64,000 bases of DNA, taken from positions 124,001-188,000 of the IMG/VR virus record IMGVR_UViG_3300025009_000050, one strand, 5' to 3'. Both the position numbers and the translations under genes were made by a program. How positions within the stretch are numbered: position 1 is the stretch's first letter; each line of letters begins with the position of its first letter. This document shows, one piece after another, positions 8,301-47,285 of the stretch. The notes below the pieces were generated by a model, which saw only the letters and a program-made list of their open reading frames with translations, did no database searches and was not told the origin of the DNA.

Positions 8301-8436
8301 TCTCATAACACTGTCCAATCTTGCCACTACTACTTTGTACTATACTACTAGCCTGATTATAAGGATACAGATGCCTATTATTGCCACTACTATCTAATGT
8401 ATCCCCATTCAATTTATACCAAGCTACAAGACTCAC
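5377..8436 (-). CDS. Multi-LamG (concanavalin A-like lectin) tail-associated protein (1019 aa)
   Basis: Three LamG-like repeats, each opening with LVAWYKLNGD / LVGHWTFDD / LVGWWPLNGD and closing with LDDVRVYNHALS / VDDVRIYATALS / MYDFRLYNREL. W-H-L..W/Y core strands are present. Confidence 0.88.
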   Translation of the reverse strand: MSLVAWYKLNGDTLDSSGNNRHLYPYNQASSIVQSSSGKIGQCYERTVKTSEYLATTENIDLTGSFTMATWAFVTVTEASANGLVTNHNHNTNYGAGITVRQISSTDFRISCNTGSGTGRTYNEYYGTSNIYNKWSHLVMRYDDNIKQITLWVDGIKEHTVTYTMKCAPDKIALFAWSTGYLDSSSYRPLCKLDDVRVYNHALSDKEIKELSKALVGHWTFDDFQEYTINYAQYTITAYTPYYTYSRDGNTHTCYRQSGSTSQTVALQCSTFTSAVTTGTIYTISGYLYLNDVPFKTTVPCISTYHTNTLNKITRDDGYFEYTQTFSTSGWIIHSDLCSALIGDTIKLVNLQIEIKDHATPFTEGTRDGKAYDSSGYNNHTMLDANCPQWIPDSKIGSGCYKFNGTNNYMGIENFVPGTTSLTISSWFNKIGEGSNYECVLHKGPDNSIGSTEYWLGVDLNDYLTATIGAVTGVGWSAGQTPVTATLGTWYHLAASWDGAVVKVYINGEYIKQYSLTSYSGSVAPMRFGSSSNGMNYQFNGIVDDVRIYATALSADDIKELYQQRASLDDKGNLFVRKIHELENIAQETNNAIINRLFTNGLSSYTQSNCQVSLTTRGYRIYRPPNLIYPDCGNTVWGGLKVNLFNIDPNILQKGCKYRISFIIEGQSSNGIGAMYFSNQMGWGGGGLTSVSASKYSTLPSNFQGRKEIYATFNITDDIWKVCTTTYSVFVAGTSYNCYRDLCWGFQYTSTGSLGTDLYVTNFKIQDITDGEPINLKETGTMNMLDISEVGIIDGLVGWWPLNGDAKDRSGNLNHGTENNITYTSGPEGQCSIFNGANGWINTGYKPQFDTISFCVWINLDDALSGSFHICTIGDNDFNPQILMDIKKLRFYCDGASLDGNTVLTVGQWYYVCFVIKNINATQLNCAMYINGQLDKQQDLTVKINDRIYPNPLAIGQDWDGSTPTDFFKGKMYDFRLYNRELIPEEINTMYELTSGSTNRMKFTSDGRVLIKGQISEVI

Positions 8437-31000: not shown

Positions 31001-31402
31001 GCGGCTCGCTCTAATGTAGGCAATCAACTCTTTAAAATTATTGTAATCTGGATTAGCTGAGTTCTCCAAGTTGGGTCCGAATACTACATGGTCATAGTAT
31101 AAGAATTCGTTAGCCGCTTGTGCCTTTGAAACAGCTCCATTGAATATGATAGGATTACCAAGAAATATACATACGGAGGGAGTTTTCAGTGCCTTAGAGC
31201 TTTCAAGACTAGCTATCCTATCCCTTACTGTCAAGCTGCTTCCTTGTGGTGTCTTGCCTAATGTTTGTTCTATAGAAATAACTACGTCCTGGAGATCATT
31301 TATGTGCTCAGCATCTACCCAATCTCCAGTAGTATCTTCCATACCGGGAATAGCATTCTGTTTCCTAGTAAAATTGTCTAGGTCATCTGGATAATTAGCC
31401 AT
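19034..31402 (-). CDS. Giant tail / host-recognition protein (4122 aa): GH/spherulin-like TIM barrel, pentapeptide-like repeats, CBM, Gly/Thr beta-rich shaft, YVTN beta-propellers, discoidin-like domain
   Basis: Single uninterrupted ORF with ATG and AGGTG/GAGG SD. A(N/Q)IA.ATIT 10-mers; NVLKNSDF...VQLEEGDIATAW CBM cassette; many YVTN-type blades (LYVTNYSSDTVLIVNIATNTIEKRIDVGSGPRPIAY); TIDLGAVY...VEISEDNVAW...RYIR. Confidence 0.85.
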   Translation of the reverse strand: MANYPDDLDNFTRKQNAIPGMEDTTGDWVDAEHINDLQDVVISIEQTLGKTPQGSSLTVRDRIASLESSKALKTPSVCIFLGNPIIFNGAVSKAQAANEFLYYDHVVFGPNLENSANPDYNNFKELIAYIRASRDIKLYGYIDVGVITSNFNLTQIETKISAWDVLGVDGVFLYNFGYDFGVSRARQNDIINFLHSRELSAFVQSTHAVDTFGSAYNAQYNPDYTNSLIDKRDIYLHENIAVDTTSVNAYINSIEYAKSLITYRNNLGTKIFGVATIDHNQTQEVAQSYFDYAQSVAILCSYDAFYAVTEDYGINSNALKLYRNLSLVGNYYDKNPQISEVAGTYTRVGSFGKITVNTVNHSYTLEGISIPGENITGTINYATIVDSVIDAINANPDSIIDPEKIAPLLVSNIKDIVIQAINDSCNSGLTINDARIGDLNASHIVAGDIAAGRIQANIIQAINAYVQSLTVEQINAGVINANAISASVVDAINANIGSAVIDQAHIGDLNASHITAGDISADRIQTNVVDAINANLGTATIDGAVIRNATITSAQIASATITSANIALATITSAQIATAAIGTANIQDAAIINAHISNAAINTANIANGAITNAQIATATIMTSNIQNASITSALIADASITNAHVVSLDAGKITTGYLGAGRIEAGSITANMLAAGTITADSAIIGIAAITSANIADAAITSAHIADATITNANIANATITSANIALATITSANIANATITAANIQLATITNAQIADATITNANIAFSTITSANIADATITSAKIALATITNANIADATIGTAQIADAAITTAKVGTAQIDTANIKDAAITTAKIGTAQISTALIADASITNAKISDLSAEKINAGYINADRMKAGVIDAINARFGEAYIDGAVITNLDAAVITAGSISTDILKSTVIQAINATADTLFINSSKITSISADKLNVGFGGYNVLKNSDFFFNDVEGSCLNWTAIGTEPTRPSTYGFRWSRKCFYVNDVTAVTRGYEQTISNDYAGKTLALSAWVKWKNVVMGTTSSNKLLVELHYQYNNGVSDVDQFERISLVGSCTVESEFERVQKIMSLTPLAPNWTVNFIKVRVYLNECAGEFSATCVQLEEGDIATAWTRNPEEMNGAQNNVLITSEGIIITGGKLTVVDPTGTVTINNGNIAAETITTSMISTDGLNASVISAGTIDANSVSIATKAGGTGNRFFIDTNGLSVQDKDTIDGTTNMVRIDSSGLSISSDGGSIWTNKITGLGLSVTSAEIASLDAGKITTGTLSVTGSMSVSGGNVVLSSSGVTISGDSGIYVSGAGGIRIKEGTLKVDNNENITQVTIGQYTTGQYGIKAGSTTLDSSGITIGQGSIDIGSGVFTVTNTGILTATSATITGAVNATSGYFGGSVDGISVGSTGLDVVGSGTITSGTAVLSSSGLTITGSGASINLNSGKFIVASDGTLTATAGTVGGWTLSTDTLTSDNGLVTIKSSSTSNYIRTANALISPTKVVQLDSTGLTITGGAISVQTTDGSTAIDGNGINASTITTGTLTVGTGMSVSGGNVVLGSTGITVSGSSGITVTGIDGITISTGTLKVLNGTTPEVIVGQYTTGNFGIKAGNTILNSSGITMNQGSISINSGVFAVTSAGALTATSATVTGAINATSGYFGSSTNGITVNSTGLTVSGTGTIVSGKVIVKNDRIVVNNASDILQVTLGYNGTSYGIFAGTTKLDSTGLNMTQGSITLGTKFSVSTDGTLTASSATISGSISATSGTIGGLTVESTSVTFGNVTLNSSGIGVAGTSGIAVTGTGTIVAGYVTTYSDRIEVKNGTTAQAILGKYDTTNYGIKAVAGDIGGWIISSTDLKASNLVLDNTGKIRIGTNITLDGTTTTGTITATNVDLTGKITATSGSVGSWVVNTDLHSVNNVIRLNPTAETISVYNVDTAEVIFGKYDGLSYGLKAGNTILNSSGIAANQGTIGGLTIGDHHIQTNGFISGGTGFKISDNGLLEAGNVNLTGSVKATSGEFGVGSGRINASNDGIWAGPGVGVSGSVFWISSKPQFIGADGTTINPGDAYFKGSIVVEADSFISSGSDLVISEGSVIAGSRNSARVEMTYNEAAGGYISCWGYDSYSVLTEFFKVDRTGAKLYGDITATSGTILGNLSVGASSNVYLDGTSNAIYLYDNTDEYNDRVVRLNNLGLYISTDSGVTYDPALTGTGLNANVINDGQLTIADHGGGASGIVIKQWNETLNGYVDNVSINPGGIDVYNGAITVHSDKTGEVLIGGGYLRVKGLDMGVVTSNNYVGNGNFNMASDRYGLKQLNQDEVFLGRAQSSGGAVSNPTYHYAGWPDYPTRNPHTVYTYNVNPDGTLNLYDPENLSDPNWPNITRVSFNPQWSAVHPITGHCVIPNDADNFVTVINKDGNLVRNLKSWKGGLFGAAFTPAQSATSLLPNAPMGARLVVCGDDIDRKRAPWDMVVFDTSDSDPANWTRIGVIDVGEFPSKVICDDKGYAYVTISLDDNVYKIDIVNMRVVAIMMLTDVRGIPVIPQPIWISQDYSKIYVGGVVSDYVYEIPADFATPFASCRKFSILPYDGNRGIIHDLRTLPDGNICFSSASETDGYIAILNKDTGVMMTYIDKTMTDKLSAQTLAMEVGRQNFYGSTTLCPHPTQPIIYVTCTARCVVSVLSYQTGELIEIQRIEAGSNPSGVSISTDGTKLYVPNHHYHTYPLGANRIWGYNSSDNFYATDDTFDTTQKFYHYNPSGIIITDNRYVWIVNRATNDITIRDTNNWSNELVWEKIEDVGNKPFDIKINNAKTKVFVSNDDEDDQNTPDFITIIDVGTKLVEGHIHVADRPMGIEISSDDKYVYAACYDGKMVQKASVADHIVVNSAYLNGKPKYLKLVGSTLYATCSDTDELYVIDANTLDIIQIISCDEGPLQMVNVGSKLYVTNYSSDTVLIVNIATNTIEKRIDVGSGPRPIAYNPVYGFIYVGCSGEGTVAIINSTTDTVVDWAMTGHNPYHIAVSADGEKWYTSAHGPEGIYAYGEGNPFTGDAYLDNSGITHKYGAEYWMPTRSNWTRGADKTLTSFSSVEFWPSSKLQGKQGYAQLTVMGMYNAYARIEQDIYQFVNNSDGACEYYTELIELQQGIPLKLTEDVADFKDITGQEKRRIQLISATDVSIIYIEGVHYVVNYDVNEVSRLGDTIPASGKIENTVLVDTTAVTMIANGKNYNTITVYPLGQTAGEYIENTDYIIDRVNNTIARTVNSAIPSGNSVTVKYRHCLKVRYYYHPNKRNYSDSVVSADFFWKWPRPENQWVRMQLDELVPKFIYVDNDNIDPWRPIHDYGKPLYEDATPYWLKQDNTKLYQVPEVKGLVYSAYSDRVPVASITPSAIPISGETDNVKKTDGSTVVLPVGSQNLTIDLGAVYYANNITIDHGILVNNAKVEISEDNVAWVEVFNGLLAVGPSYQITFQKTYNSDYEGPKRVRYIRSTLDNTTNQWKQIKVMGDWKVGSYTFASNTIWDSESKRETFVTLGGTTAKRFDDPSITNIDPLNPTTRPSERVRYRLYYSGTDGSHDLRGEVSVYNAYENTLYKGVGYRNVTTHLPYAVLDTTGYDYVYDYMANILWRTADSTIADGEEVRIVYKFVQEDLSSLPLCIAHRNPNTGIADMDASVAESDVTGAWIQWTFTNDYRCDWYIGWIADIGLGNVNIYLDNNLTHSISQMSTKVERFSQISQDLLPGEHTIKLVQQQGRVNFDVIKLEDLQLLQMNSQIVASPSLNPVELFTWYTAKISPYKARKYLGRGTQVLSGAYDSLRVDKDLGIPNNQVPVRYRLRFQTTLEGRADAVDGEGGTGGEIGDRKWRFEQGAAMVTNVTMEKGVNPTYWRMAPAADKYTGFAIESWDSQEPKHTGIQTSHIANGAITADKIKAFSIIDEHIASNAKIQESKLSLNYATHPHEDLAALDKIMLSDGGILVDGKVKQQGQYEIVHRRPLYGIAGDLQFQTDSTTWETMVFAYGPFGYALPSVQTSANRYYRLYAIYSDDITNTDASATIAPRVRVELASDTILVYEWKMPHTYGAVNDQRDAYSSYFQVSGLTSGDHCNVKVRIQNDACNYAAGGKSVGIKYLELIAYDVF
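28850..30100 (-). repeat. Degenerate 30-nt / 10-aa tandem coding repeat (A[NQ]IA[DNL]ATITS)
   Basis: Many consecutive units such as ANIANATITS, AQIADATITN and ANIALATITS in the translation. Periodic gctatattagc / gtagcatc motifs are visible in the DNA. Confidence 0.9.
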
Positions 31403-35362: not shown

Positions 35363-38300
35363 TCACATTCCATATTCATTAATAGTCATTAACCTTATTT
35401 TGATTTCTGTTCCAAGACCACTAATAGAATCGTATATTGTTATCTTGTTATACGTTGCGTCTGGAAGTTCTTCATGACTTATCTTAGGCGCTGTATACAT
35501 GTAGATATGCCTACCAGCTACACTATTGGTTGAATAAGATGAGCCTGTGTTCTTTAGCTCAACGGTATCTCCAACAATGTATTTAATAAGTCCTCCAGTG
35601 ATCCGATTACCAGATACAAGTGCTATCTTATTCATAGACAGCTCTAAGTCTACATTATTAGTAGGATTACCGTGTTTATCAACTGTTTCTATTATGATAG
35701 TAGACATATCTACTCCATTACACAATAGATTACTTGGGCTTAGATTTACTCTGAAATGACTTAATTCGCTTAAGTCATTTGTTATATACATGAATCCATT
35801 ATGATTAGGATTATAGAGTGGGTTTAGCTCTGCTGTGTTCGCTAGAGAGTAATTGAGAGAGTTTTTCTCGTAAGTTATAGTGAGTGGTTCGCCTGTATTC
35901 TGACCTAGGCGAATATATGCGGCTCCATATTTTCCGTTAGAATCCCATATATAACAGTCTCTCAACTGGTATATAACCTTTAACCTCTTTCCTTTTAATG
36001 CTTCAGCCTCATCGGAAGTTAATGTCATTGTTACTTCACTACCATTTATGGACAAGGGATCTCCTATTATACTGTTCTTATCATTATACACTACTGTTCT
36101 AAACTTGTCAACCTCTAGATCAGAAAAAGTTAAAATAATCTTATTGGTTCCATCACTGATGAATTCCTCTGTATTATATGTTGTATATTCACCAGTTGTT
36201 TCATCAGAAAAAGATACCTTGCGTAGTGGAGTACCATCTTGTTTCTGTATCACTAAGGGTGCTCTTTGTTGAGGAGCTGGATTAATAGCTACGAATGACC
36301 CATCGAAGGTTTCATTTATGTTCCCCTCAAATCCACATTTCATAGTCATAAGATTGGAATCAAAGTCTAATGTAGTAGAGGTGTATATACTACTGATGGT
36401 CTCTGTGGAGGGAGCGTACTTAAACATTACTAAGTCATCTAGGATACAGTTACAGTTATCTCCGAGTGAGTTTCTAGAATTTCCAATACATAATGATTTC
36501 GTCTTATGTGTGCCATCGCTGTTCCTACCATCAAATAACGATATAGACATGGGGCTACTGCTATGAATATCGTTAACATACATGTTGACATTACCAGTTA
36601 AATTATTCCATGTCACAGCTAAATGGTTCCACGCACTCAGTGAATCTGAGAAAGTATAGGAGATATCCTGTAATAATGAGTCATTCATAGAAACAAACTT
36701 TATTGATCCATTCTCATATTTAAGAACAATATAATTACTCGCGTCTTCCCATACTTCAAAGAATACAGGACTGGATGTCATAGCCCCATCCATTGTTGTA
36801 TTAGACTTAAACCATAATGATATTCCACCAGGATTAGAATAATTGTAATGCATGGGATAAGTTATGATAGCATTTTCATGGTCGGTATTAGCACCCTTCT
36901 CATATCTTCCATCCACATAACTAATATCGCTAGACAAAGGCATATGTTCATCACCAATAATAATTATTTCTGGTTCTGCATACATAAAGTATCTTTGCTT
37001 GTTAATATAATAGAACCCATTATGTACCTGAGGTAACCAATTGTCCTTAGGGTTTAGGTTGTTGAGCGTACCAACTACATTGCCATCTTTAATGTATGTC
37101 TTAACCCAAATGTTGTTACTGTCTACTATATATACTAAGGTGTCTGTATTTATATTGTCTGGAATTTCAATATCAGGTATAGCTTCTATCATGTCGTTGC
37201 CAGAAGATACCTTCTTACCGCTACAAGTTACTACATTACTAACCCATATATCGTTCTGTATTATAGGTTCTGTGTAATCGCAAGAGAATACTACGTTAGC
37301 ATACCTATAATCTGTATACTTATATGAGATATAATACTTTGCTTCGGCTGCTGGTTTCCTTTCATTTAACGACCAATCGATGTAATTTCCGTTCTGAGTA
37401 TAATCGATATCCTTTATATAGTCTACGAATAACGGATCTGATACATAGGGCGAATCATATACTCCGTCTATACTGGTAATAAAGTTATTCGGAAGAACAT
37501 CGGTGTCTCCAGAACCTCTAGTCATAAGATGCATTATCTCTAATGTGTTATCAAATTTTACAATTGTCAGAGTATGTGGTAGTCTTGGTGAGTCACCATT
37601 GACTATGTCATCAGAAATGGTAAAGTTATTGCACCTGACACTACCTTCTACTATTTCCAACACATATGGTTGATTTGATAATATAGCTTCTGGGTCTAGT
37701 TCAGGTAGAATTATACCATTCAAGACATAGTTGTTCTTTATAGAATTGGCATTGACAAATGCTCCTTGTATTATTTTAGACTCAGATACCCATGGGGTAG
37801 GAGCAGCTGCTGTTGGAGCGTATATCTTCGCACAGATATTGTCTCCTTCAAGACTTGAAACCATATTCCACGTAGATGGATTACCGCTTGGTGTGTCAGT
37901 ACTTAAACTATTCCAAAATATATCTATTACTCTATCATCTTCATTCACATTTCCTTCTATAGGATAGCCTGGACTGTCCCATCCCATTTCTAAAAAGTAC
38001 TTATACAACTTATTTCCATTCATTATCACATTAGAGTTACCTGGGCAGATAAAGTAAGTATACATTGGTATCTCACTGGTAAGTGGATATACTACTGACG
38101 CTGCTCCGTATTGATAAAATCTCTTATTCTGCGAGTTGCTTGTTTCAGAACAGTATATCCTCAAGGAATCCGTTTGACTTAGTGTAGTTGATTCGCCAGA
38201 TCCATATCCTTTGCTATTCCAATAAAGGGTTACATAAGGTAATCCTGTCCTATTTATGTGCGTGTACGCAGGATACAAACTTCTTCCAGCCACACACTCT

Positions 38301-39742
38301 TGTTCTAACCCTTGAGGTATTGTGAGTTTACCATCGTGATGTGGCTGGTTGTCTGAACTAGCAAGTACCAATATATCAACCAAATTAACTAATTCTTTAT
38401 CGCCAGTATTATTTGAATCCACAGAAGATGTATCACCAGGTATTATCACATTCTCTTCATAAGTTGACTTACAGCGTAATTCAAATTCACTTACGTATGG
38501 TGTTGGATATGAGGATGAGCTTCTAGACAATATAGCCTTAATCTTAATCGGTACTGTTATAGGATTGCTAGCCATTTGAGTAATATCAGCCCAATTACTT
38601 GCTCCTTGATATGGAAGTCCACTGTAATAATCAACCCACTGCCCATCGATACTAGCTAGTATTTGATATCTGACTTTCATATTCTCTGTAATATTACCGT
38701 GAATATCATTATTGACAGTTCCGCTCCAATCTATAGTCCGATACTTTTCCCATACTGTGAGATTTTCAGGAGTGATAGCATTAGATACTACTTCTCCATA
38801 CGAGCTTCCTTCCTTTAATCTTATCTGATTAGTGTCATCTTGCGTATATGGTGCACTTAGGATTGTCCAAACACTACCATTATTTGAAGATTGAGTTTGA
38901 ACATATATCCTAGTACTACTAGGAGTAGTAGTAGTGTAAATTATATCTGTATATTCTTTAAATGATGGACCGAATCTAAACGTAGCAAAGTACTTACCAG
39001 TATTCGTATGATTAGCAACGTTGCCCGAATTAAGTTCGAACCTAGATACTTCAGGAGTAAGAAGATTATCAGAACTAGCTAAATGTATCTTAGCCTTTAT
39101 TCTATTCTTACTTGAATATGATGACGATGTAGCAGATACTGTCCATTGGTTGCCGGTAACATGTGTGTATACTGGCGTACATAGTTCCCAATTTGACCAT
39201 ACGGATTCATCTATATATAGAGTGCTTTCGTCATCGTAAGCTGCACTAGTTTCGACAGATATATCTGTAACAACACAAACGAAGTTACTTATGTTTATAG
39301 AGTTCGTATCCGTGTTCGTTATTTCAACTTCGTATTGAGCATAAGAACTTGTATATGATGATAAATCATACGAGGCTCCAGTTGTCATAGGCACAGTTAC
39401 AACATCAGTATTAACAACAGAACCATTAACTAGCTTCTTGACAGTAACTTGAGCGGTGCCAGATGCAGTATTATAATTTAAAATTATATTTCTAGCTGCA
39501 ACACTTAGAGTGGCTTTTGCGTTAAGGACGCTGGTCGAACCACCAACCCAATTGTCACTATATATTATGTTGCTACTATTGTAGAGATAAGTAGCAGTTG
39601 GTAATATAGTATTTAGAACTATATTAACAGACCCATTTAATACATTACCAGTATTGAATATATTAGTTATGTATTGACCAGAGTAAGCAGAGGTGACTCC
39701 GAAATATGAAGTTCCGTATATATTCTTGCCATATTGTGCCAT
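35363..39742 (-). CDS. Large virion structural protein with LamG-like and Ig-like domains (1459 aa)
   Basis: LamG-like GGISLWFK...WNHLAVTW...ILDDLVMF near 36400-36850. C-terminal invasin/Big_1-like segment LSPSNLLCNGVDMSTIIIETVDKHGNP. Confidence 0.75.
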   Translation of the reverse strand: MAQYGKNIYGTSYFGVTSAYSGQYITNIFNTGNVLNGSVNIVLNTILPTATYLYNSSNIIYSDNWVGGSTSVLNAKATLSVAARNIILNYNTASGTAQVTVKKLVNGSVVNTDVVTVPMTTGASYDLSSYTSSYAQYEVEITNTDTNSINISNFVCVVTDISVETSAAYDDESTLYIDESVWSNWELCTPVYTHVTGNQWTVSATSSSYSSKNRIKAKIHLASSDNLLTPEVSRFELNSGNVANHTNTGKYFATFRFGPSFKEYTDIIYTTTTPSSTRIYVQTQSSNNGSVWTILSAPYTQDDTNQIRLKEGSSYGEVVSNAITPENLTVWEKYRTIDWSGTVNNDIHGNITENMKVRYQILASIDGQWVDYYSGLPYQGASNWADITQMASNPITVPIKIKAILSRSSSSYPTPYVSEFELRCKSTYEENVIIPGDTSSVDSNNTGDKELVNLVDILVLASSDNQPHHDGKLTIPQGLEQECVAGRSLYPAYTHINRTGLPYVTLYWNSKGYGSGESTTLSQTDSLRIYCSETSNSQNKRFYQYGAASVVYPLTSEIPMYTYFICPGNSNVIMNGNKLYKYFLEMGWDSPGYPIEGNVNEDDRVIDIFWNSLSTDTPSGNPSTWNMVSSLEGDNICAKIYAPTAAAPTPWVSESKIIQGAFVNANSIKNNYVLNGIILPELDPEAILSNQPYVLEIVEGSVRCNNFTISDDIVNGDSPRLPHTLTIVKFDNTLEIMHLMTRGSGDTDVLPNNFITSIDGVYDSPYVSDPLFVDYIKDIDYTQNGNYIDWSLNERKPAAEAKYYISYKYTDYRYANVVFSCDYTEPIIQNDIWVSNVVTCSGKKVSSGNDMIEAIPDIEIPDNINTDTLVYIVDSNNIWVKTYIKDGNVVGTLNNLNPKDNWLPQVHNGFYYINKQRYFMYAEPEIIIIGDEHMPLSSDISYVDGRYEKGANTDHENAIITYPMHYNYSNPGGISLWFKSNTTMDGAMTSSPVFFEVWEDASNYIVLKYENGSIKFVSMNDSLLQDISYTFSDSLSAWNHLAVTWNNLTGNVNMYVNDIHSSSPMSISLFDGRNSDGTHKTKSLCIGNSRNSLGDNCNCILDDLVMFKYAPSTETISSIYTSTTLDFDSNLMTMKCGFEGNINETFDGSFVAINPAPQQRAPLVIQKQDGTPLRKVSFSDETTGEYTTYNTEEFISDGTNKIILTFSDLEVDKFRTVVYNDKNSIIGDPLSINGSEVTMTLTSDEAEALKGKRLKVIYQLRDCYIWDSNGKYGAAYIRLGQNTGEPLTITYEKNSLNYSLANTAELNPLYNPNHNGFMYITNDLSELSHFRVNLSPSNLLCNGVDMSTIIIETVDKHGNPTNNVDLELSMNKIALVSGNRITGGLIKYIVGDTVELKNTGSSYSTNSVAGRHIYMYTAPKISHEELPDATYNKITIYDSISGLGTEIKIRLMTINEYGM

Positions 39743-39747
39743 CTAAC

Positions 39748-41031
39748 TTATCTCCTTCTTAGTTCTAATTTTAAATCAGCGACTTCAAGACGTAGGTTGT
39801 TATTAGTATTTTCTAAGTTTATTAACCTTTCCATCAAACTATCTACCGATGGGGTTATGCTATTAAATAAATCCTCTGTATTCTTTTGTCTGCTTATTAT
39901 ACTGGAGAGCTTATTATTCATTCCATCAATTAAAGTTGAAAGCTTCTCTTGTTGTAAATTGTCTATGTTCAGTCTATCTCGAAGTTGTTTACCAATTATA
40001 CTATCAACCTTTACGGTTTTACAATGTTCTGAAGGACTTACAAACATGTCTCCGCACACCTCAAGATTACAGGCTAAACACCTATCACAATATGAATCGT
40101 GTTCACACTCATAACACTTCTCTAAACTACTTCTATTATAACTACGGAATATACTAGATTTGTCTAAGTTAATACCCGTATGAATGCTACCCATTTTATA
40201 GTCTTCTGTTCCTCTGTTTCTGTCGTAAGTATAGAACCTAAGGCATGGATATATGTCTCCATTAGGAGTTATCCCAATTGATTTATGTCCAGCTCCACAT
40301 GTCTTATCTGGGTTGATGTAAGGTGGTAAACCAAGATAATGACTAAGTGGATCGAAAGTAAAAGACTTCCCAGACCTATGAAGCCCATACATATAGTCAC
40401 TTATCATCCTCAACTGTCTTTGATATTCCTTAACTTCCTTCTCTGACCAGGTAGTTTCTTGTACGCATTGTGTCTTAATGTTATTAATACCATACTTATT
40501 ATGATAAAATATGACACTTTCAGCTAAGTACTTAACGTTATCTGGTTGTATCGTTATGCGAACAGAATAGTTAATTGATGGTCGAGCAACCTTTGGTAGG
40601 TTGACATCGACCATATCAAATGAATCTTTACCGTTAGCCATTGGTCTGTTCTTATTCTGCACCTTAGCAATACCGTCGATACTAAATTGGATATCGTCTA
40701 TTTCTTCTATTACATCTATCATATCGTCTGTTAATAATGTTAGGTTAGTAGACATACCAATTTTACATTGCTTCCCAGTTTCTTCTTCCTTAGATCTTAT
40801 ATATGGGATAATATGTTTGATAACATCAAAGTTTAGTAGTGGTTCCCCACCAAATAGTTCCACTAGCAGTTTATTGCTACCAGAAGTAAATAGCATATCT
40901 ACAGAAGACTTAGCTAAGTTTAAGGTCATAACACTGCTAGCCTTACTCTGCTCATAGCAATAAACACAACGCAGATTGCAATTCTCTGTAAGCATTAAAT
41001 ATATACAATCTATCTTTGTATTAGATAACAC
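39748..41031 (-). CDS. Radical SAM / SPASM domain protein (427 aa)
   Basis: CxxxCxxC (NCNLRCVYC, 40957-40980), FGGEPLL, STN.TLL, FSIDG..KVQNKNR. SPASM cysteines CGAG...GDIYPC...CYEC...CDRCLAC...C...C. GTG start with GGAGG SD. Confidence 0.95.
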   Translation of the reverse strand: MLSNTKIDCIYLMLTENCNLRCVYCYEQSKASSVMTLNLAKSSVDMLFTSGSNKLLVELFGGEPLLNFDVIKHIIPYIRSKEEETGKQCKIGMSTNLTLLTDDMIDVIEEIDDIQFSIDGIAKVQNKNRPMANGKDSFDMVDVNLPKVARPSINYSVRITIQPDNVKYLAESVIFYHNKYGINNIKTQCVQETTWSEKEVKEYQRQLRMISDYMYGLHRSGKSFTFDPLSHYLGLPPYINPDKTCGAGHKSIGITPNGDIYPCLRFYTYDRNRGTEDYKMGSIHTGINLDKSSIFRSYNRSSLEKCYECEHDSYCDRCLACNLEVCGDMFVSPSEHCKTVKVDSIIGKQLRDRLNIDNLQQEKLSTLIDGMNNKLSSIISRQKNTEDLFNSITPSVDSLMERLINLENTNNNLRLEVADLKLELRRR

Positions 41032-41038
41032 AATGATT

Positions 41039-41043
41039 CCTCC
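41039..41043 (-). promoter_or_regulatory. Shine-Dalgarno GGAGG for the radical SAM gene, abutting the TAG of the upstream Cys-tail gene
   Basis: The minus strand reads TAGGGAGGAATCATTGTG, consistent with translational coupling. Similar GGAGG/GAGGTG sites precede most genes in the window. Confidence 0.8.
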
Positions 41044-43149
41044 CTATTCGCTATAAGAGTGATTTCCACAATGTCCATAGCATCCACAATAATATGTGTT
41101 GGCTGAAGTTTGCACCCAATCACTAGCTACTTCATTTCCATCTACTGAGCGAATACGATACTGATAGTAACCTAGCTCGTTAATAGTATGAGTATAAGAC
41201 GTTGCTTTACTCATACTACCATTATTATATTCTCTAGTGATAGACAAATTATTTATAGCCATACCCCAAGTTCCACTACTTTGCCAGTATCTTGGTACGA
41301 CAATAAATTTGGCTACCACACTACTAGTTATTGTGGTATTAAAAGAATAAGTAGTATCGTATTGGGATGCAGTTATATAAGTACTAGTTGGTAACCAATT
41401 ATTTGTCTCTTCGTTATAATACACTATCATCCATTCGAGACCAAGAGTTCCAGAAGACACGTAGAATCCACATGATATATTGGTGACTCCAGAAAGCATA
41501 TCGAATGTTACAGGGTTTTCATAGAACCAACGATTGCTATCATAATAGTAGTAACATTGAGAGCCCAAATACCATGTAATAGCTTTAGTTTCGATAACAG
41601 GAGATCCACCGAGTCCATTCCATACTACTTTATTATTAAGTTTATAATTTAACTCGTAGTGGTCAAGAAGATTACTGGCTTGTGGAGATAAAGGATACAT
41701 AGAGTCCGTCTTATTTCCGAACTTATCTATAGTACATATATTGACATATCCATTCCATGTTACATCCCACTCATGAGATATCTCATAATAGGCTTTTCCT
41801 GTATTGCTAATAATAGTATACAACCAGTAGTCAGTTCCATTTGAATACCATACCTCATAAGCAGCAACATCTTTTGAATAGCTTGGATACCAGCTATATT
41901 CAAGATTAGGATTAGTAGATGTTGCTGCTATCCAGCTAACATCTATTGTATTGTCTGATTGAGAAGAGGAGCTAGAACTAATAGAGCCTGGAGGGTTAAG
42001 AGATAGATAAGTAAAGTACGGTAGTTGCCTCATCGATGGAGCTACAGGAGCTATATCAACGATACTAACAAGTTTCTCTTGTAATTCAATAAGATGATCA
42101 ACGTTTATAACAGTAGTTCCACCTTGTTTAATGTAAGAGGAATTCCAGGTTGTGTTGTCTTCATTTATAGAAATACTTTTAATAGCTGATGCTATCTCTA
42201 TAAAATCAGTATCCCTGATGTTATTAACTTGATTACCTGTTATAGATGTTGTTATAACAGGTAATCCGTATTTAGGAAGCATGTTGTTTATTGCATCACG
42301 AAGTTCAGTTATTTCTGAAGACCTAATTGTACCACGTCGTCTTGTAGGGGTAGTTATCACAGGTTCGTCATGAGTTATAATATTTATTGATGATAGTATT
42401 GGAGTTATACTATCATCAATAGTTGTTAAAGTAGCTCTTACCTGAATACGATCAAAATTGTTATCTGGACTATGGATATATCCTGTGTAAGGTATACTGA
42501 CCCAGTCACTCCAAGAATTATTTCTACTCGTTCTAGCTTCTATTGTACAAGTAGTGCCTGTTGGAATATATGCTAACCAGCTAATTCTTACATTACTAGA
42601 ATTCATAGAGGTATACGTATTCGATGTATATGTTCCATTAGTGTAATATCCTTCTCTATAAAATGGACCCCACCTGATATGATCTATCCATGCGTAATCA
42701 GTTTTTCCATAATTGTTATATTTAAAGTAGCCTATAAATATATAATCATTAGTTATACCGTCATTTAATGTTACAGTCTCTTCTTTCCAATCAGATGAAG
42801 AACCAGTGTATAAAATATTGTTTCCTGCGCCTTTGACATACATATATCCATCTAGTGTTTGGCGTTGAGTTTTATATTTGAATATAAGTTTGCCACCTGC
42901 TGGTATATTTAAAGTTCTATAGACAAAGTTATCGGTAGAATAGTATGGCGCAGAATTAATAAGGAATGAATCATTACTTATATCCCAATTATAGTAGCCT
43001 CCATGTGTAAGCCACTCACCAAACGAACTGCAATCCCATTGTTCGTACCATTCTGTAGAATGCCTACTCAGCTTGGCTGAAACAGCATCAACTGTTAAGT
43101 TCGTGATGTCAGCATTTATTCTGAAATCAGAAACTCCGAAATAAGCCAT
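41044..43149 (-). CDS. Virion-type protein with beta-sandwich/FN3-like modules and Cys/His-rich C-terminal tail (701 aa)
   Basis: TIRSSEITELRDAIN and DHLIELQEKL helices, FN3-like YQYRIRSVDG..SDWV, and terminus YYCGCYGHCGNHSYSE. Confidence 0.75.
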   Translation of the reverse strand: MAYFGVSDFRINADITNLTVDAVSAKLSRHSTEWYEQWDCSSFGEWLTHGGYYNWDISNDSFLINSAPYYSTDNFVYRTLNIPAGGKLIFKYKTQRQTLDGYMYVKGAGNNILYTGSSSDWKEETVTLNDGITNDYIFIGYFKYNNYGKTDYAWIDHIRWGPFYREGYYTNGTYTSNTYTSMNSSNVRISWLAYIPTGTTCTIEARTSRNNSWSDWVSIPYTGYIHSPDNNFDRIQVRATLTTIDDSITPILSSINIITHDEPVITTPTRRRGTIRSSEITELRDAINNMLPKYGLPVITTSITGNQVNNIRDTDFIEIASAIKSISINEDNTTWNSSYIKQGGTTVINVDHLIELQEKLVSIVDIAPVAPSMRQLPYFTYLSLNPPGSISSSSSSQSDNTIDVSWIAATSTNPNLEYSWYPSYSKDVAAYEVWYSNGTDYWLYTIISNTGKAYYEISHEWDVTWNGYVNICTIDKFGNKTDSMYPLSPQASNLLDHYELNYKLNNKVVWNGLGGSPVIETKAITWYLGSQCYYYYDSNRWFYENPVTFDMLSGVTNISCGFYVSSGTLGLEWMIVYYNEETNNWLPTSTYITASQYDTTYSFNTTITSSVVAKFIVVPRYWQSSGTWGMAINNLSITREYNNGSMSKATSYTHTINELGYYQYRIRSVDGNEVASDWVQTSANTYYCGCYGHCGNHSYSE

Positions 43150-43161
43150 TATTTAACCCTC

Positions 43162-44247
43162 CTAGTCATCATATACTGAAGTATGAGAAGGCATTATAAT
43201 TATACTATCTATATATAGATAACCCACTGCTGCGTTATGACGCCATACACCGAAATAGAATCTATTAAGGTTATCTGATGTTGGTGTGTGATCAAATGTT
43301 ATATATAACATTTCATAATTACCAGGGTTCTCAAAGTCTTTAGCATATATATTTCTAACGTTTTGTTCTAAAACGTTTCCAACTGATAACTGGCATACCA
43401 TTGCTTCTGCATCTGGAGGATCAGTTATTTTTATTCTAAATCCTACTACAAATTTACCATATCGTAATTTCTGATATCCACCAGTAGGTCCAATTATCAT
43501 AAATTCATTTGTAGTACCACTCTTAACAGAGTATCCAGAGTATGCTTTATCATCACTAACTTTGGTAGAACTTATCCCTTCGATATGGTCTTGTGCATCC
43601 CATTCTCCATATAACCCACCAAAGAACTTATTATCAAGATATAAGTCACCAGTTATCGGATAACTTGTTCCTGCTGTACGTGGGAATTGTGCATCAATAG
43701 AATCTTTAATCGTTCTATTGTCTGTACTAGACATTTTTATGTCAGTAGCCATTAAAGAACTATTGGTAACGCCAAGTTCTATAGCTGTTTTTGGTAATAG
43801 TCCCTGTACTTCACTTGCTAAATCAACTTTAGATGGTGAAGCAGTTCCACCAAGATGCTTATGGGCATACAATGTATCTCTAGCAGAATCATACGTCCAT
43901 CCCACACTATTAGCTGTAATATACCTAATGTCATAGTCCTTATCCTCTAAGTTTTCTATACGAGCCTTTACTGTTTTAAAGTCACCTTGCGGCATTATAC
44001 CTAACGTTCTTTCAACACATAACATAGCTTCCTGTAAAACATTTATATGTGCAGCCATTATATAGGTGGTATAATCTGTTTCAGGATTCATATCTGTATT
44101 TTCATGTTGTTCTCCAATAGTATATACTAAGTTAGCATTGTCAGCAGAAGGAAAACGCAAGTCTGTAACAGCAGCGACAGGGTATCTTGAATCTATTTGT
44201 GCTGGATATTGTGTCTTAGTTAAGTCAGAATATAAAGTATTTGCCAT
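43162..44247 (-). CDS. Baseplate-attached protein with C-terminal carbohydrate-binding-like beta-sandwich (361 aa)
   Basis: N-terminal AAHINVLQEAMLCVERTLGIMPQG motif is shared with the 4122-aa protein. C-terminal GP..YQKL.YGKF.VGFRIK...YIDSIII. Confidence 0.7.
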   Translation of the reverse strand: MANTLYSDLTKTQYPAQIDSRYPVAAVTDLRFPSADNANLVYTIGEQHENTDMNPETDYTTYIMAAHINVLQEAMLCVERTLGIMPQGDFKTVKARIENLEDKDYDIRYITANSVGWTYDSARDTLYAHKHLGGTASPSKVDLASEVQGLLPKTAIELGVTNSSLMATDIKMSSTDNRTIKDSIDAQFPRTAGTSYPITGDLYLDNKFFGGLYGEWDAQDHIEGISSTKVSDDKAYSGYSVKSGTTNEFMIIGPTGGYQKLRYGKFVVGFRIKITDPPDAEAMVCQLSVGNVLEQNVRNIYAKDFENPGNYEMLYITFDHTPTSDNLNRFYFGVWRHNAAVGYLYIDSIIIMPSHTSVYDD

Positions 44248-44248
44248 C

Positions 44249-45892
44249 TTATATCACTCCTACGTTGAGTTTTAAACTATTACCGCTCACTACACAGTTG
44301 TTCATTTCGCCATTTCTCCAGTCACTATCATTGTCAATGATTTGTTGAAAGTCTCCATAACTAAGCTCTACATGATTGTTAACAACTTCAGTGTTTTCTT
44401 TAGTGATATGTATCAATGGAAAAGGACCAGAGTCATTTGAAAGGTCATCTGTTCTCTCGAATAATAATCCTGAATTAAGAGTAGTAGTGTGTTCAATATC
44501 AGATGTGTCTTTCCAGCCAACAGTAATAGAATTCAGTAATGGAGTGTCGTTAGTATCATTTTCCATTGTTACTATAACTTTAAGATATGGTCTAGGAGTT
44601 ATTCCATCAACACTTGGACTCATTATTTTATTACTATTAACTACCTCAAGGGTTGTAGACATACTTTCTACTGTGTCCCAGGATATGATGGGCCATTGAT
44701 TATACTCACGTTTCCCATTGATAACTATGTTATCCTGTAGATCTATGTTCTCTGCGGCCACTATGGTGTACTTGAACTCCTCGACATTGGGGGTGTTCTC
44801 TATCTTGGTTCCCTTTGCCAATATCCTATAGCTGAAAGTGTGCTCTGGATACCTCACTTCACTGCTATCAATAGCAGCTTGTGCTTGAACGTAGTATTCA
44901 AATTCTTGTTCACTACTTTCATTCTTAGGCGAATTGACGTATAAGTCAAGGCCACAACCTACTCCACTCTGGAAGTCTTCATCCACCCATCCTTCAGTAG
45001 AAGCATTCCAAACATGTGGTAAGTAATCAAATCCTAACTTTGTATGCTCAAGAGACCTCCAATATGCTTTATCCCAACTCATGTTATCCCATGTATTAGC
45101 AATCTGATCATTTATTATTCTTGCATATTTCTTAAGCTTGTCACTAGCACTACCGTCCTCGTTAAGTAGTGAGTCACGAAATGCTATATCACATAATTCC
45201 TTTATCTCAACATCGCTAGTACCCAAGAGTCCAGTAATACCATTCTTTAGTCCTACTAAAGTAGGACCACCACGTAATAAGAATACGTTCTTTAACCTGT
45301 CTCTATATCTTTGATTATCTTCTTTAAATAATCTTGGAGTACCTAATAATAATCCAATTTCATCAAAAGAGTTCCAGATATGATGGATTGCAAATTCGCT
45401 AATGTATAATCCTCCATCATCATCTTCTCCATCATATGCATCAACGTGTAAATATTCAAATTCTATTGAACAATCACTTGGTCTACGGATGTAACATATG
45501 CCTGTATCATAATCAACCATACAGAAATCAGTATTACCAAGATAGAAGTCTTCATAGCTCGTCACTTCTTTTACATCAAATGGTTCGTATATGTTAGTGT
45601 CATTATCTTTATATTTAGCTCTGAAAGATAACTTCTTCCAACCATCAAGCAAGATAGGATATAGATCTGTTTTCCATACATAGTCTATCTTGCTTATATC
45701 AGCAGTATCTAGATATTGACTATTAATCATATCGAGTATATATTCTTCTACTTGCTCAAACTCTAATCCAGGTGAGTTAATGAATTGTGTACCTAATGAA
45801 TTCTCATTGGTTCTCATTGTCATCCAGCTAGGAAGATATCTGAGCATCTTCTTCGTTACATTACTTAAAGGAAAACTATCGTTATATGACAT
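44249..45892 (-). CDS. Putative baseplate wedge protein (547 aa)
   Basis: Directly downstream of the J-like gene. Motif FDEIGLLLGTPRLFKEDNQRYRDRL...RGGPTLVGLKNGI resembles wedge (tail protein I / gp7-like) subunits. Confidence 0.65.
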   Translation of the reverse strand: MSYNDSFPLSNVTKKMLRYLPSWMTMRTNENSLGTQFINSPGLEFEQVEEYILDMINSQYLDTADISKIDYVWKTDLYPILLDGWKKLSFRAKYKDNDTNIYEPFDVKEVTSYEDFYLGNTDFCMVDYDTGICYIRRPSDCSIEFEYLHVDAYDGEDDDGGLYISEFAIHHIWNSFDEIGLLLGTPRLFKEDNQRYRDRLKNVFLLRGGPTLVGLKNGITGLLGTSDVEIKELCDIAFRDSLLNEDGSASDKLKKYARIINDQIANTWDNMSWDKAYWRSLEHTKLGFDYLPHVWNASTEGWVDEDFQSGVGCGLDLYVNSPKNESSEQEFEYYVQAQAAIDSSEVRYPEHTFSYRILAKGTKIENTPNVEEFKYTIVAAENIDLQDNIVINGKREYNQWPIISWDTVESMSTTLEVVNSNKIMSPSVDGITPRPYLKVIVTMENDTNDTPLLNSITVGWKDTSDIEHTTTLNSGLLFERTDDLSNDSGPFPLIHITKENTEVVNNHVELSYGDFQQIIDNDSDWRNGEMNNCVVSGNSLKLNVGVI

Positions 45893-45903
45893 CAGAAACC
45901 CTC

Positions 45904-46710
45904 CTACTTGATAATAACATTTCCTGGAGTTATCTTTTCATCCCACATTGAATAGTAAGTTGCAAGATATGTTTTCTTATTATTTATCTTAAATTCTAAA
46001 ACTTCTCCATTTATGATTTTGTCACTCACACTAAGTGCCTTACTCATAATTACATTGATAGATAATGCTTCTCCCATGGATATATTATCTATATAATACT
46101 TGATTGCTGAACGTGCAGAATAAGATAGACTACTTGCCTCCACGGAGCTTACACTTGGATGCATAACTAATTTCACACTAACATCAACAGTCGTGATATT
46201 CGGTTTCATAGCAACTGCTTTTATACCGTATGCTTTCTCTCTGTCTAACACTGCTTGTACTGAGTTTATAATAGTATCAGAGGTATTAGGATCGTCTACC
46301 ATTACATATACAGAAAAACTTCCTATCCCATATGTGTAAGGAACTAATACTACGTCTTTGACATCTGCTACTGATAGACTTTTTAGTCTAATAGTAGTCT
46401 CGTTAGCTCCTGCTGAAGAATACACTTGTTGACTAATCAAGTATCTATAATTGTCATCTGTATCTCCACTCTTGCGTGGACAGTTTAACATAGCCCCCAT
46501 CAAGTCTAAAAACTTACCAGATGCCGTGCTTATGTATGCCATAGATATGTATCTGTCAAGAGTGGTATAACATTCTTCTAGCTCTTCATTTATTATGTCA
46601 AGAAAGGTTCTTGCTATTGTTCCAGGAGAAAAGTCTGTTATATCAGTATTGTTAGCTAAAGCATCCATCATTCTTTGCATTCTTACTTTCTTATTAGAGT
46701 ACACTATCAT
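45904..46710 (-). CDS. Baseplate J-like wedge protein, short form (268 aa)
   Basis: ITDFSPGTIART...ISTASGKFLDLMG...R...DTDDNYR...GSFSVYV. ATGA overlap with the upstream gene. Confidence 0.8.
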   Translation of the reverse strand: MIVYSNKKVRMQRMMDALANNTDITDFSPGTIARTFLDIINEELEECYTTLDRYISMAYISTASGKFLDLMGAMLNCPRKSGDTDDNYRYLISQQVYSSAGANETTIRLKSLSVADVKDVVLVPYTYGIGSFSVYVMVDDPNTSDTIINSVQAVLDREKAYGIKAVAMKPNITTVDVSVKLVMHPSVSSVEASSLSYSARSAIKYYIDNISMGEALSINVIMSKALSVSDKIINGEVLEFKINNKKTYLATYYSMWDEKITPGNVIIK

Positions 46711-47285
46711 ACTACACCAAACTCCTTAATCCCATCTTCATATCCAAACGAAGCATATAACGTAATAGTATATGGATTAGATATGCGTATGAAATATATT
46801 ATGTTATTAGAATCAACTGGTACAGACCTTATATTCGCATCTTTAGGATTAATAAAACCATCATATGTTAGTGACTTTAATATATTGTATGAACCAATGT
46901 CAGCATTAGCCCTTGTATTCTGTTCGCCAATCAAATCTTCAAGATTAGCTCCGATAGTAGGATGGTGATACCAATCTGGATTTTGTGTCTTTATCCTGTT
47001 GTACACGACTTGTTTAAACCAGCTTATGTCTGATATTAATGCTATATCCTTCATTTCCTTCAACACTTGATTACCATTATCGTCAATACCACAATCTACA
47101 TAAATCTTATTCCCCTCATCATCAACTCGGCAAGGCGTAGTAATGATATCTCCTTCAACTGAGACAAATGTGCCGATACATCCATTTATCAAACAAGCTT
47201 GCCCTTCTTTGGCGTCAATAGGAACGTAATGAGTATCATCTTCAGAGCAGATAACTTTCCCAGCGCGTATATCAAAGTCTCTCAT
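46707..47285 (-). CDS. gp25-like / DUF2634-like baseplate wedge (sheath-initiator) protein (192 aa)
   Basis: KQVVYNRIKTQNPDWYHHPTIGANLEDLIG...ILKSLTYDG. Position next to the J-like gene; TAATG overlap. Confidence 0.75.
   Translation of the reverse strand: MRDFDIRAGKVICSEDDTHYVPIDAKEGQACLINGCIGTFVSVEGDIITTPCRVDDEGNKIYVDCGIDDNGNQVLKEMKDIALISDISWFKQVVYNRIKTQNPDWYHHPTIGANLEDLIGEQNTRANADIGSYNILKSLTYDGFINPKDANIRSVPVDSNNIIYFIRISNPYTITLYASFGYEDGIKEFGVV

Follow-up and report, generated by a model that had tools for sequence, protein, structure and literature searches.

Does the radical SAM (rSAM)/SPASM enzyme encoded within the tail/baseplate operon of a large groundwater phage act on the structural-type protein encoded just before it? 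The 64-kb stretch of phage DNA analyzed here (the window) carries a complete rSAM/SPASM gene directly after a gene for a 701-residue protein whose last residues form a Cys-x-Cys-Tyr-Gly-x-Cys motif. The initial annotation proposed that the phage may cross-link or metallate the tip of a structural protein. Our analysis supports this interpretation. A second, distantly related phage keeps both the enzyme and the tail, which suggests that phages may chemically staple their own virion proteins the way bacteria staple small antibiotic peptides. The pairing of enzyme and tail is well supported, whereas the role of the tail as substrate, the chemistry, and the virion location are inferred.

The gene anatomy was examined first. 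Both genes are on the minus strand. The 701-aa ORF spans 41044-43149 and ends in ...SANTYYCGCYGHCGNHSYSE. The 16 tail residues, YYCGCYGHCGNHSYSE, are encoded at 41047-41094, and the conserved core C-x-C-Y-G-x-C (residues 688-694) is encoded at 41068-41088. The rSAM ORF spans 39748-41031 and encodes 427 aa from a GTG start. The junction (41032-41046) consists of the TAG stop (41044-41046), a GGAGGA Shine-Dalgarno sequence (41038-41043) that directly abuts the TAG, and a 6-nt spacer; the two ORFs happen to be in the same frame. The initial annotation noted the abutment of the Shine-Dalgarno sequence and the stop codon. The abutment is genuine, but it is not specific to this gene pair because 13 of the 21 genes in the window end in TAG, and most of those TAGs are followed directly by GGAGG or a near variant. 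It therefore shows operon-wide coupling rather than a special link, and carries no specific weight. The tail has 3 Cys in 7 residues. Among the 21 real genes of the window, the only stretches with at least 3 Cys in 8 residues are this tail and the CX3CX2C and SPASM motifs of the rSAM itself. We roughly estimate that, at about 0.9% Cys, 3 Cys in 7 residues would be expected about 0.3 times per 25,000 residues anywhere, and about 1e-3 times at a terminus of a gene adjacent to the rSAM. No standalone Cys-rich precursor, RRE protein, protease, or transporter is present in the 64-kb window.

The genomic context places the 701-aa gene in a variable slot between conserved baseplate genes and conserved giant structural genes. 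Upstream (43162-45892, minus strand) are genes for a 361-aa protein and a 547-aa baseplate/virion protein, and further upstream lie baseplate wedge genes (45904-47285); PHROG hits in this region are phrog_21059, phrog_6, phrog_1160, and phrog_975. These upstream genes are 45-55% identical to genes of the loci designated L093 and L094, L093 being the locus of the closest rSAM homologue, and 28-34% identical to those of Bacillus phage Edson. Downstream (35363-39742, minus strand) is a gene for a 1459-aa virion-type protein (DUF4815; PHROG 'virion structural protein') whose N terminus is 45% identical to the gene after the L093 rSAM. Its internal CIGNSRNSLGDNCNC patch is not a credible substrate; in Edson the corresponding positions are not Cys, and the segment contains an IG...DD motif. 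The slot is defined by synteny with Bacillus phages Edson and KLEB27-3, where the slot gene is annotated 'structural protein, FN3 domain'. The 701-aa protein itself has no Pfam or PHROG family, and the ESM Atlas gave FN3/MAM-like leads only. Profile comparison to the Bacillus phage slot proteins with hhalign gave a probability of 19%, so homology to a proven virion protein was not detectable, and the structure could not be modeled (pLDDT 42). Its position in the baseplate operon, between genes whose relatives are virion proteins verified by MS, supports a structural role.

The class of the enzyme was determined by profile, sequence, and structure comparisons. The protein hits Radical_SAM (PF04055; 46.8 bits against a cutoff of 29.5), Fer4_12, and SPASM (PF13186; 21.9 bits against a cutoff of 21.5). 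[quoted passage not shown] The SPASM region (40021-40299, minus strand) contains seven cysteines in the expected pattern of C-x(9-17)-G-x4-C, a gap, CX2CX5CX(2-3)C, a gap, and C. They are assigned to two auxiliary clusters, AC1 (C245, C263, and C318) and AC2 (C306, C309, C315, and C337), following CteB C344/C362/C413 and C400/C403/C409/C432 (PMC10177961). All ten cluster cysteines are thus present. The best NCBIfam match is the PapB ranthipeptide maturase model (215.8 bits), followed by SCIFF and CXXX-repeat maturases. The best PDB sequence hit is CteB (E 1.5e-37), and the AF2 model (pLDDT 81.9) best matches CteB (PDB 5WGG; TM 0.72, rmsd 2.8 Å). Anaerobic sulfatase maturases (anSME) are much weaker matches by model (TIGR03942; 67.1 bits against a cutoff of 349) and by sequence (E 7e-6), and are second by fold (TM 0.64). 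These data group the enzyme with thioether peptide maturases and not with sulfatase maturases. However, it scores below every curated family cutoff, so its chemistry is not assignable by membership.

The enzyme has no N-terminal leader-binding domain. It starts only 17 residues before its first cluster Cys and aligns only from CteB residue 97. It has an extra C-terminal helical extension (residues ~334-426; 39751-40032, minus strand) with predicted helices at 334-380, 396-409, and 411-426, for which the aligned core of CteB has no counterpart. The extension is shared with the L093 rSAM, where the alignment runs to residue 406. Alignments also run through this region in several rSAMs that lack the N-terminal domain (P0084, P0018, and P0003), and heptad-like C termini appear at three other loci (L013, L016, and L017). 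The extension may dock the enzyme on its substrate in place of an RRE.

The idea that enzyme and tail belong together was tested by searching for homologues of the 701-aa protein. An exhaustive HMMER search of 1.84 billion representatives found one true homologue, P0122 (E 4e-28; 28% identity), which sits in the same baseplate synteny in another phage, at L093. P0122 ends in CSCYGYCDFSIY (...SANLYTCSCYGYCDFSIY) and is followed immediately by a 419-aa rSAM that is the nearest relative of the window enzyme (36% identity, E 3e-94; a 100/99 sister pair in the tree). This junction reads TAG TAG AGGAGG...ATG, with tandem stops. The surrounding baseplate genes are 41-55% identical, while the 701/624 pair is only 25-28% identical. 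Yet the tail, conserved as CSCYGYC in P0122, is the single most conserved 14-residue window of the alignment (9/14 against a mean of 3.5), and all three tail Cys are kept compared to 2 of the 5 other Cys. The syntenic Bacillus jumbo phages Edson, KLEB27-3, and 0305phi8-36 have a different protein in the slot, with no Cys tail and no rSAM. No other coding-frame Cys cluster exists in the window, apart from the enzyme's own motifs, or in L093/L094. Only two independent lineages carry the tail-plus-enzyme pair, so the co-conservation rests on one comparison.

The survey was then broadened to other viral rSAMs. Of 74 IMG/VR loci with a recognized homologous rSAM, 58 have a same-strand gene within three genes that carries at least 4 Cys in 12 residues. 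Among near genes the rate is 67/381, compared to 20/488 for far or opposite-strand genes. Several of the loci we inspected lie next to tail-fiber or baseplate genes. The second-best rSAM match, at L013, neighbors a protein with repeats such as DCGCYGDC. Most phage neighbors have 13-82 Cys, whereas the tail in the window has only 3, so this locus is the weakest member of the general pattern.

The explanation we favor, with somewhat better than even confidence and in the absence of any experimental datum, is that the enzyme is a phage-encoded, leader-domain-less relative of the thioether-forming RiPP maturases PapB and CteB, and that its substrate is the C-terminal tail (C-x-C-Y-G-x-C plus 5-7 more residues) of the 701-aa protein. 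In this model, during late infection in the reducing and probably anoxic host cytoplasm, the enzyme cleaves SAM reductively, binds a tail cysteine on its open auxiliary cluster, abstracts a hydrogen from a nearby residue, and forms up to three intramolecular sulfur-to-carbon (thioether) links. PapB links Cys to the carbon adjacent to a carboxylate lying C-terminal to the Cys, including the C-terminal residue of the peptide (PMC12373016), and the substrate Cys binds auxiliary cluster 1 (PMC10177961). By analogy, the likely acceptors are carbons next to a carboxylate that lies C-terminal to the Cys: Glu701 and the free C terminus in the window protein, and an Asp and the C-terminal Tyr in the homologue. 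The product would be a small, redox- and protease-resistant knot at the exposed C-terminal tip of a peripheral baseplate or fiber protein, a disulfide substitute that survives anoxic, reducing habitats and serves stability or receptor contact. The model does not explain how an enzyme lacking the RRE that PapB and CteB use to bind their substrates would recognize a folded 701-aa protein.

Other explanations are less likely. The same pairing could hold with a different chemistry, such as aromatic cyclophane (C-C) links on the conserved Tyr/His residues, formylglycine-type oxidation of Cys, or intermolecular links between subunits. The tail is rich in Tyr and His, Tyr686, Tyr691, and Gly692 are conserved, and there are weaker but real hits to the cyclophane-forming maturases YhhB, XyeB, and DynA (about 62 bits) and to anSME. 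However, thioether maturases score far higher, the three Cys are the invariant feature of the tail, the anSME substrate motif C/S-x-P/A-x-R is absent, and the neighbors of homologues are defined by Cys repeats rather than aromatic repeats. An equally unlikely alternative is that the tail is an enzyme-independent metal-binding, Fe-S-binding, or disulfide motif of an oligomeric fiber tip, and that the rSAM acts on a host protein or on a peptide or cofactor encoded outside the window, where about 180 kb of the 244-kb genome lies. The Cys/His/Tyr-rich composition suits metal binding, phage fiber and tail-tip proteins such as T4 fibers and lambda gpL probably bind Fe, Zn, or Fe-S, and the tail has fewer Cys than typical Cys-repeat neighbors. 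On the other hand, tail and rSAM are gained and lost together and are adjacent in both lineages, a Cys-rich candidate partner lies near the rSAM in most viral loci surveyed, and His is not conserved, because GHC aligns with GYC and NH aligns with FS. Metal binding and modification are not mutually exclusive.

It is doubtful that the 701-aa protein is a giant carrier or 'leader' from which the ~15-residue tail is cleaved and released as a small RiPP (toxin, signal, or anti-defense peptide). The motif does resemble stand-alone 80-aa precursor peptides carrying two CxCxGxCGSNY repeats next to related rSAMs at four loci (L131, L143, L154, and L164), and the enzyme family normally makes secreted peptides. 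However, no protease or exporter lies in the window or in L093-L095, the gene sits inside a tightly coupled baseplate/fiber operon in a slot filled by structural proteins in relatives, and the region just before the tail (SAN-Y) is conserved as part of the preceding domain. Least likely is a coincidence in which the rSAM is a selfish or auxiliary 'moron' inserted at a permissive junction and the tail is neutral sequence. The generic stop/Shine-Dalgarno junction and the variability of the slot compared to Bacillus phages are compatible with this idea, but it is disfavored by the recurrence of the same pair in the same order in a phage whose slot protein has diverged to 28% identity, with the tail as its most conserved segment, and by the low estimated chance of a 3-Cys cluster at the terminus of a neighbor.

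A broader and more speculative possibility, which we consider unlikely but not excluded, is that phages of anoxic habitats (groundwater, sediment, and gut) routinely use their own rSAM maturases to install irreversible thioether 'staples' in Cys-motif modules of tail-fiber and baseplate proteins, a virion-hardening or receptor-binding chemistry that replaces disulfides where these cannot survive. The window would then show its minimal form, a single CxCYGxC unit at the free C terminus of a baseplate-peripheral protein, recognized without an RRE through the C-terminal helical extension of the enzyme. The links might even join subunits into a covalently locked fiber tip. rSAM/SPASM maturases are known as makers of small secreted peptides (RiPPs) and of a few enzyme cofactor sites. 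If a phage uses one to cross-link the tip of its own tail or baseplate protein, RiPP chemistry would extend to large structural proteins and to viruses, the many 'orphan' rSAM genes beside Cys-repeat proteins in phage genomes would be explained, and a redox-proof alternative to disulfides would be suggested for extracellular particles in anoxic environments. The modification could also be a determinant of virion stability or host recognition, and an RRE-independent enzyme that recognizes a short C-terminal tag on a folded protein would be a useful protein-stapling tool.

Among the closest known systems, the best-scoring curated family is PapB/freyrasin (NCBIfam NF047865). The window enzyme matches the whole 330-position model, and PapB is likewise an rSAM with two auxiliary clusters. 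The regiochemistry of PapB (PMC12373016) fits a Cys motif placed 5-7 residues from a free C terminus whose only carboxylates lie downstream. However, the score is below the 340-bit cutoff, as is that of the L093 homologue (202.2 bits). The tail CGCYGHCGNHSYSE has no CX3D motif and no Asp, and its only carboxylates are Glu701 and the C terminus, whereas the homologue has C-D and a C-terminal Tyr. The candidate substrate is a 701-aa phage structural-type protein rather than a short leader-core peptide, and the enzyme is encoded in a phage tail operon. Substrate recognition by PapB is attributed to an RRE (PMC12373016), and its first cluster Cys is at C119 (PMC10177961). CteB and the SCIFF maturases (TIGR03974) share an identical cluster-cysteine pattern with the window enzyme, and two related phage loci (L003 and L040) carry SCIFF-like CQxSCQ tails on large glycine-rich-domain proteins. 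The window enzyme scores 160 bits against a cutoff of 425, lacks CteB residues 1-96, which probably correspond to the leader-binding domain, falls in a separate clade, and has no SCIFF peptide ORF in the window. A canonical RiPP cluster has a short precursor with a leader, a fused or separate RRE, and a leader protease and/or exporter; the bacterial homologue P0002 has a 55-aa ORF and ABC transporters, in contrast to the window. The CXXX-repeat peptide/rSAM system (TIGR04115 and TIGR04119) also pairs an rSAM/SPASM with a Cys-repeat target and dominates the phage loci found here, with 100-830-aa CX3C-repeat proteins beside the enzyme. The window enzyme scores 154.9 bits against a cutoff of 350 for TIGR04115 and lies outside that well-supported clade, and its neighbor has a single C-x-C-x3-C unit rather than tens of CXXX repeats. 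QhpD/QhpC and anSME appear to offer precedents for SPASM rSAMs that act on proteins rather than free peptides, with QhpD probably making Cys-to-Asp/Glu thioethers in the amine dehydrogenase gamma subunit and anSME acting on folded or unfolded sulfatases. Their similarity to the window enzyme is much weaker (135 bits against a cutoff of 453 for QhpD), their substrates and motifs differ, and neither is viral or structural. The HK97 capsid isopeptide chainmail shares the concept of post-translational covalent cross-links that harden a phage particle. HK97 cross-linking is autocatalytic, involves Lys-Asn isopeptide bonds, and occurs in the capsid, whereas here a dedicated radical enzyme would act on a C-terminal Cys motif of a tail or baseplate protein.

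The region lies in one long minus-strand operon of very large genes. The window comes from the 244-kb viral contig IMGVR_UViG_3300025009_000050, which is found in groundwater metagenomes and, at low depth, in soil metagenomes. A near-identity DNA search against GenBank phages found nothing, and single-sequence locus searches returned only the source contig. The operon encodes giant structural proteins of up to 4122 aa (19034-31402). The 2452-aa (55112-62470) and 478-aa (62483-63919) proteins contain no cysteine at all, whereas the 1019-aa protein (5377-8436) has 23 dispersed Cys. The 701-aa ORF (41044-43149) ends ...SANTYYCGCYGHCGNHSYSE. Its TAG stop is followed directly by GGAGGA, a 6-nt spacer, and the GTG start of a 427-aa ORF (39748-41031) that hits Radical_SAM, Fer4_12, and SPASM. 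The upstream genes hit baseplate PHROGs, namely the wedge subunit phrog_6, baseplate phrog_1160 and phrog_975, and the virion protein phrog_21059. The downstream 1459-aa protein hits a 'virion structural protein' PHROG and DUF4815.

These data confirm the initial annotation of a radical SAM/SPASM gene directly following a 701-aa protein with an unusual C-terminal tail, with one correction. The initial annotation pointed to the abutment of the Shine-Dalgarno sequence (SD) and the upstream stop codon, but this arrangement is a property of the whole operon and says nothing specific about this gene pair. Across the gene junctions of the window (1742-63919), 13 of 21 genes stop at TAG, and most of those TAGs are followed directly by GGAGG or a near variant that serves as the SD of the next gene. 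This looks like systematic stop/SD overlap, implying tight translational coupling along a >60-kb structural operon. The two ORFs happen to be in frame, and stop-codon readthrough or recoding that would fuse them was considered. Readthrough was rejected because TAG is the normal stop of 13 of the 21 genes, and the homologous junction in L093, a contig carrying a related gene pair, has two tandem TAGs.

The composition of the tail was compared with the 21 real proteins of the window (about 25,000 residues, about 0.9% Cys). The only stretches with at least 3 Cys in 8 residues are this tail and the enzyme's own cluster motifs, and all other such stretches lie in noncoding frames. No small Cys-rich ORF, RRE protein, protease, or exporter is present in the window. 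The CNC patch of the downstream 1459-aa protein was considered as a substrate and rejected because its Cys are not conserved at the corresponding positions in Bacillus phage Edson.

The enzyme was scored against the NCBIfam models. The PapB ranthipeptide maturase model ranks first (215.8 bits, full model coverage), followed by the SCIFF maturase at 160 bits and the CXXX-repeat target maturase at 154.9 bits. All are below their curated cutoffs. Anaerobic sulfatase maturase (anSME) scores only 67 bits. The closest solved structure by sequence is the thioether synthase CteB (5WGG, E 1.5e-37), compared to E 7e-6 for anSME. An AlphaFold model built on 18 homologues (pLDDT 81.9) again matches CteB best (TM 0.72, rmsd 2.8 A), ahead of anSME (TM 0.64). 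Based on the CteB ligand list (PMC10177961), all cluster ligands are present: C18/C22/C25 for the RS cluster, C245/C263/C318 for AC1, and C306/C309/C315/C337 for AC2. There are two differences from CteB. The protein starts only 17 residues before its first cluster Cys and aligns with CteB from residue 97; therefore, it has no N-terminal domain. In PapB, substrate recognition is attributed to an RRE that binds the leader (PMC12373016). The enzyme also has a ~90-residue C-terminal extension that is predicted as long helices (334-380, 396-409, and 411-426).

Word-indexed protein searches with the 701-aa protein and with its homologue P0122 found only the queries themselves. Pfam at E<=1 gave nothing for the 701-aa protein, and the ESM Atlas hits scored below 0.9 and are leads only. 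An AF2 model of its C-terminal 197 residues, computed without an alignment, was unusable (pLDDT 41.8). An exhaustive HMMER search of 1.84 billion representatives found twelve hits, and only one is a true homologue. This protein, P0122 (624 aa, E 4e-28), ends ...ESANLYTCSCYGYCDFSIY. The gene order on its contigs (L093-L095) is sheath-initiator-like, Baseplate_J, 566 aa, 365 aa, P0122, a 419-aa rSAM, and then a homologue of the window's 1459-aa protein, which matches the window. The rSAMs are 36% identical (E 3e-94) including the helical extension. This is higher than any other homologue (33% or less), and the two form a 100/99-supported pair in a careful ML tree. A metagenome scan with the two-rSAM alignment found no closer relative, and the best full-length hit was 30% identical.

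The window 701-aa protein (41044-43149) and P0122 (L093 6437-8311) are the fastest-evolving genes of the block. They are only 25-28% identical, compared to 41-55% for the flanking baseplate genes, and the 701-aa protein has a ~100-residue insertion (about residues 507-640) that P0122 lacks. This behavior is typical of host-range determinants. Even so, the tail window SANTYYCGCYGHCG / SANLYTCSCYGYCD is the most conserved 14-column segment of the 553 aligned columns, with 9 identities against a mean of 3.5 and a next-best of 7. All three tail Cys are conserved, compared to 2 of the 5 other Cys. In L093 and L094, the tail is again the only Cys cluster outside the enzyme. The 90% clusters of P0122 and of the rSAMs show no variation in the tail, and contigs from four other runs showed no differences across the region; population-level selection could therefore not be assessed.

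More distant syntenic relatives tell the converse story. The Bacillus jumbo phages Edson, vB_BauM_KLEB27-3, and 0305phi8-36 share 24-38% identity in the shared structural genes. The slot in Edson and KLEB27-3 holds an unrelated ~730-aa protein that is annotated in KLEB27-3 as 'structural protein, FN3 domain'. Profile-profile comparison of the window protein with these slot proteins was not significant. These phages have no Cys tail and no rSAM anywhere in their genomes. Thus, tail and enzyme are present together or absent together, although only two lineages carry the pair.

A profile scan of IMG/VR returned 80 loci with homologous rSAM/SPASM genes, and an rSAM was recognized by our filter in 74 of them. 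In 58 of those 74, a same-strand gene within three genes has at least 4 Cys in 12 residues. The rate is 67/381 among near genes compared to 20/488 among far or opposite-strand ORFs. These partners are not small peptides but proteins of about 100-830 aa. Some have CX3C arrays of 13-82 Cys and carry glycine-rich domains (PF12810/PF21722), and others have CxxC or CxC arrays. Others have SCIFF-like C-terminal tails (...SCQVSCQASCQIACQNCQ) on 520-570-aa proteins in ~257-kb phages with five rSAM paralogues. In this jumbo-phage family (ENA contigs L003-L005, 7488-18949), the five paralogues lie in one cassette, interleaved with a 572-aa glycine-rich-domain protein ending in a SCIFF-like tail (CKTSCQVSCQASCQIACQNCQYDTCHNQNC) and a 405-aa protein with internal CX3C repeats. 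The family was considered as close kin of the window phage and rejected because only the rSAM matches.

In several of the loci inspected (L009, L010, L012, L013, L016, L017, and L045), the cassettes sit among tail-fibre, baseplate, or lysis genes. In L009 (5857-7137), an rSAM/SPASM enzyme has a CxxC-repeat segment (CIECEVCV...CSSCYTCQKCVTCQ) fused to its own N terminus. It follows 254-aa and 105-aa CxxC-repeat proteins and a tail-fibre-like gene, and it lies upstream (three ORFs apart) of a terminase-like gene. In L016 (3670-8311), the gene order is a tail-fibre-like gene, an rSAM, a 294-aa CDCxxRT-repeat protein (51 Cys), a second rSAM-like gene, and then what look by eye like lysin and holin genes. 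The first rSAM ends in a heptad-like helix resembling the C terminus of the window enzyme. A cellular counterpart of the 'large protein plus many maturases' theme is found in a bacterial chromosome cluster (L088/L089, GCA_002402315.1 contig, with spore gene YunB nearby), which holds six or more tandem rSAM/SPASM paralogues plus a secreted 569-aa protein with an N-terminal patch CDCCCACGCDYCLCECQCECVAHC.

In the tree, the large gut-phage set belongs to the named CXXX-repeat family, and the window/L093 pair is a separate lineage. The second-best rSAM match (L013, 32% identity) neighbors a 364-aa protein built of units such as DCSCNSDCADGCGSD. One unit reads CGCYGDC compared to CGCYGHC in the window. 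Stand-alone 80-aa acidic peptides ending in two CxCxGxCGSNY repeats lie directly after a 360-377-aa rSAM/SPASM in nonviral metagenome contigs (L131, L143, L154, and L164). A conserved upstream block in these contigs encodes ~400-aa, ~396-aa, ~944-aa, and ~200-aa proteins of unknown role. The peptide motif resembles the window tail (CGCYGHCGNHSY), and no NCBIfam model matches the peptide. Thus, the window is a minimal, single-unit member of a broad theme. By Cys count it is also the weakest member, which is why the P0122 comparison matters.

The best-supported reading is that the enzyme modifies the tail. In the absence of experimental data, homology suggests that the most likely chemistry is thioether formation from Cys sulfur to carbon. 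PapB binds the substrate Cys at auxiliary cluster 1 (PMC10177961) and links the sulfur to the carbon adjacent to a carboxylate located C-terminal to the Cys, including the peptide's own C-terminal residue (PMC12373016). Both tails place the three Cys 5-7 residues from the free C terminus, and both have carboxylates only downstream of the Cys. These are Glu701 plus the terminus in the window and Asp plus the terminal Tyr in P0122. This arrangement is consistent with a PapB-like acceptor rule but does not prove it. The conserved C-terminal helices of the enzyme are a candidate element for docking onto the 701-aa protein without an RRE. A virion location for this protein is inferred from synteny alone, and a redox-insensitive staple would make sense for extracellular particles in anoxic groundwater.

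Other readings of the locus were weighed against this one. The enzyme may carry out a different chemistry on the same tail, the tail may be an enzyme-independent metal or Fe-S site with the rSAM acting elsewhere, or the tail may be cleaved off and released as a small RiPP. The sequence data do not resolve these three possibilities. A coincidental juxtaposition of tail and enzyme is disfavored by the P0122 comparison and the synteny with the Bacillus phages.

Literature searches found no description of rSAM-modified phage structural proteins, although coverage of subscription journals was incomplete, and one cyanophage paper merely lists an rSAM maturase as an 'antibiotic synthesis gene'. RiPP-type rSAM chemistry is known, and what appears to be new is its inferred application to a large phage tail or baseplate protein. 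If the wider pattern were confirmed experimentally, it could amount to a new class of virion modification. The enzyme fails the cutoff of every curated family tested, and the system lacks the defining parts of a RiPP cluster in the window. It probably works like a PapB/CteB-type maturase but is not a member of any named family.
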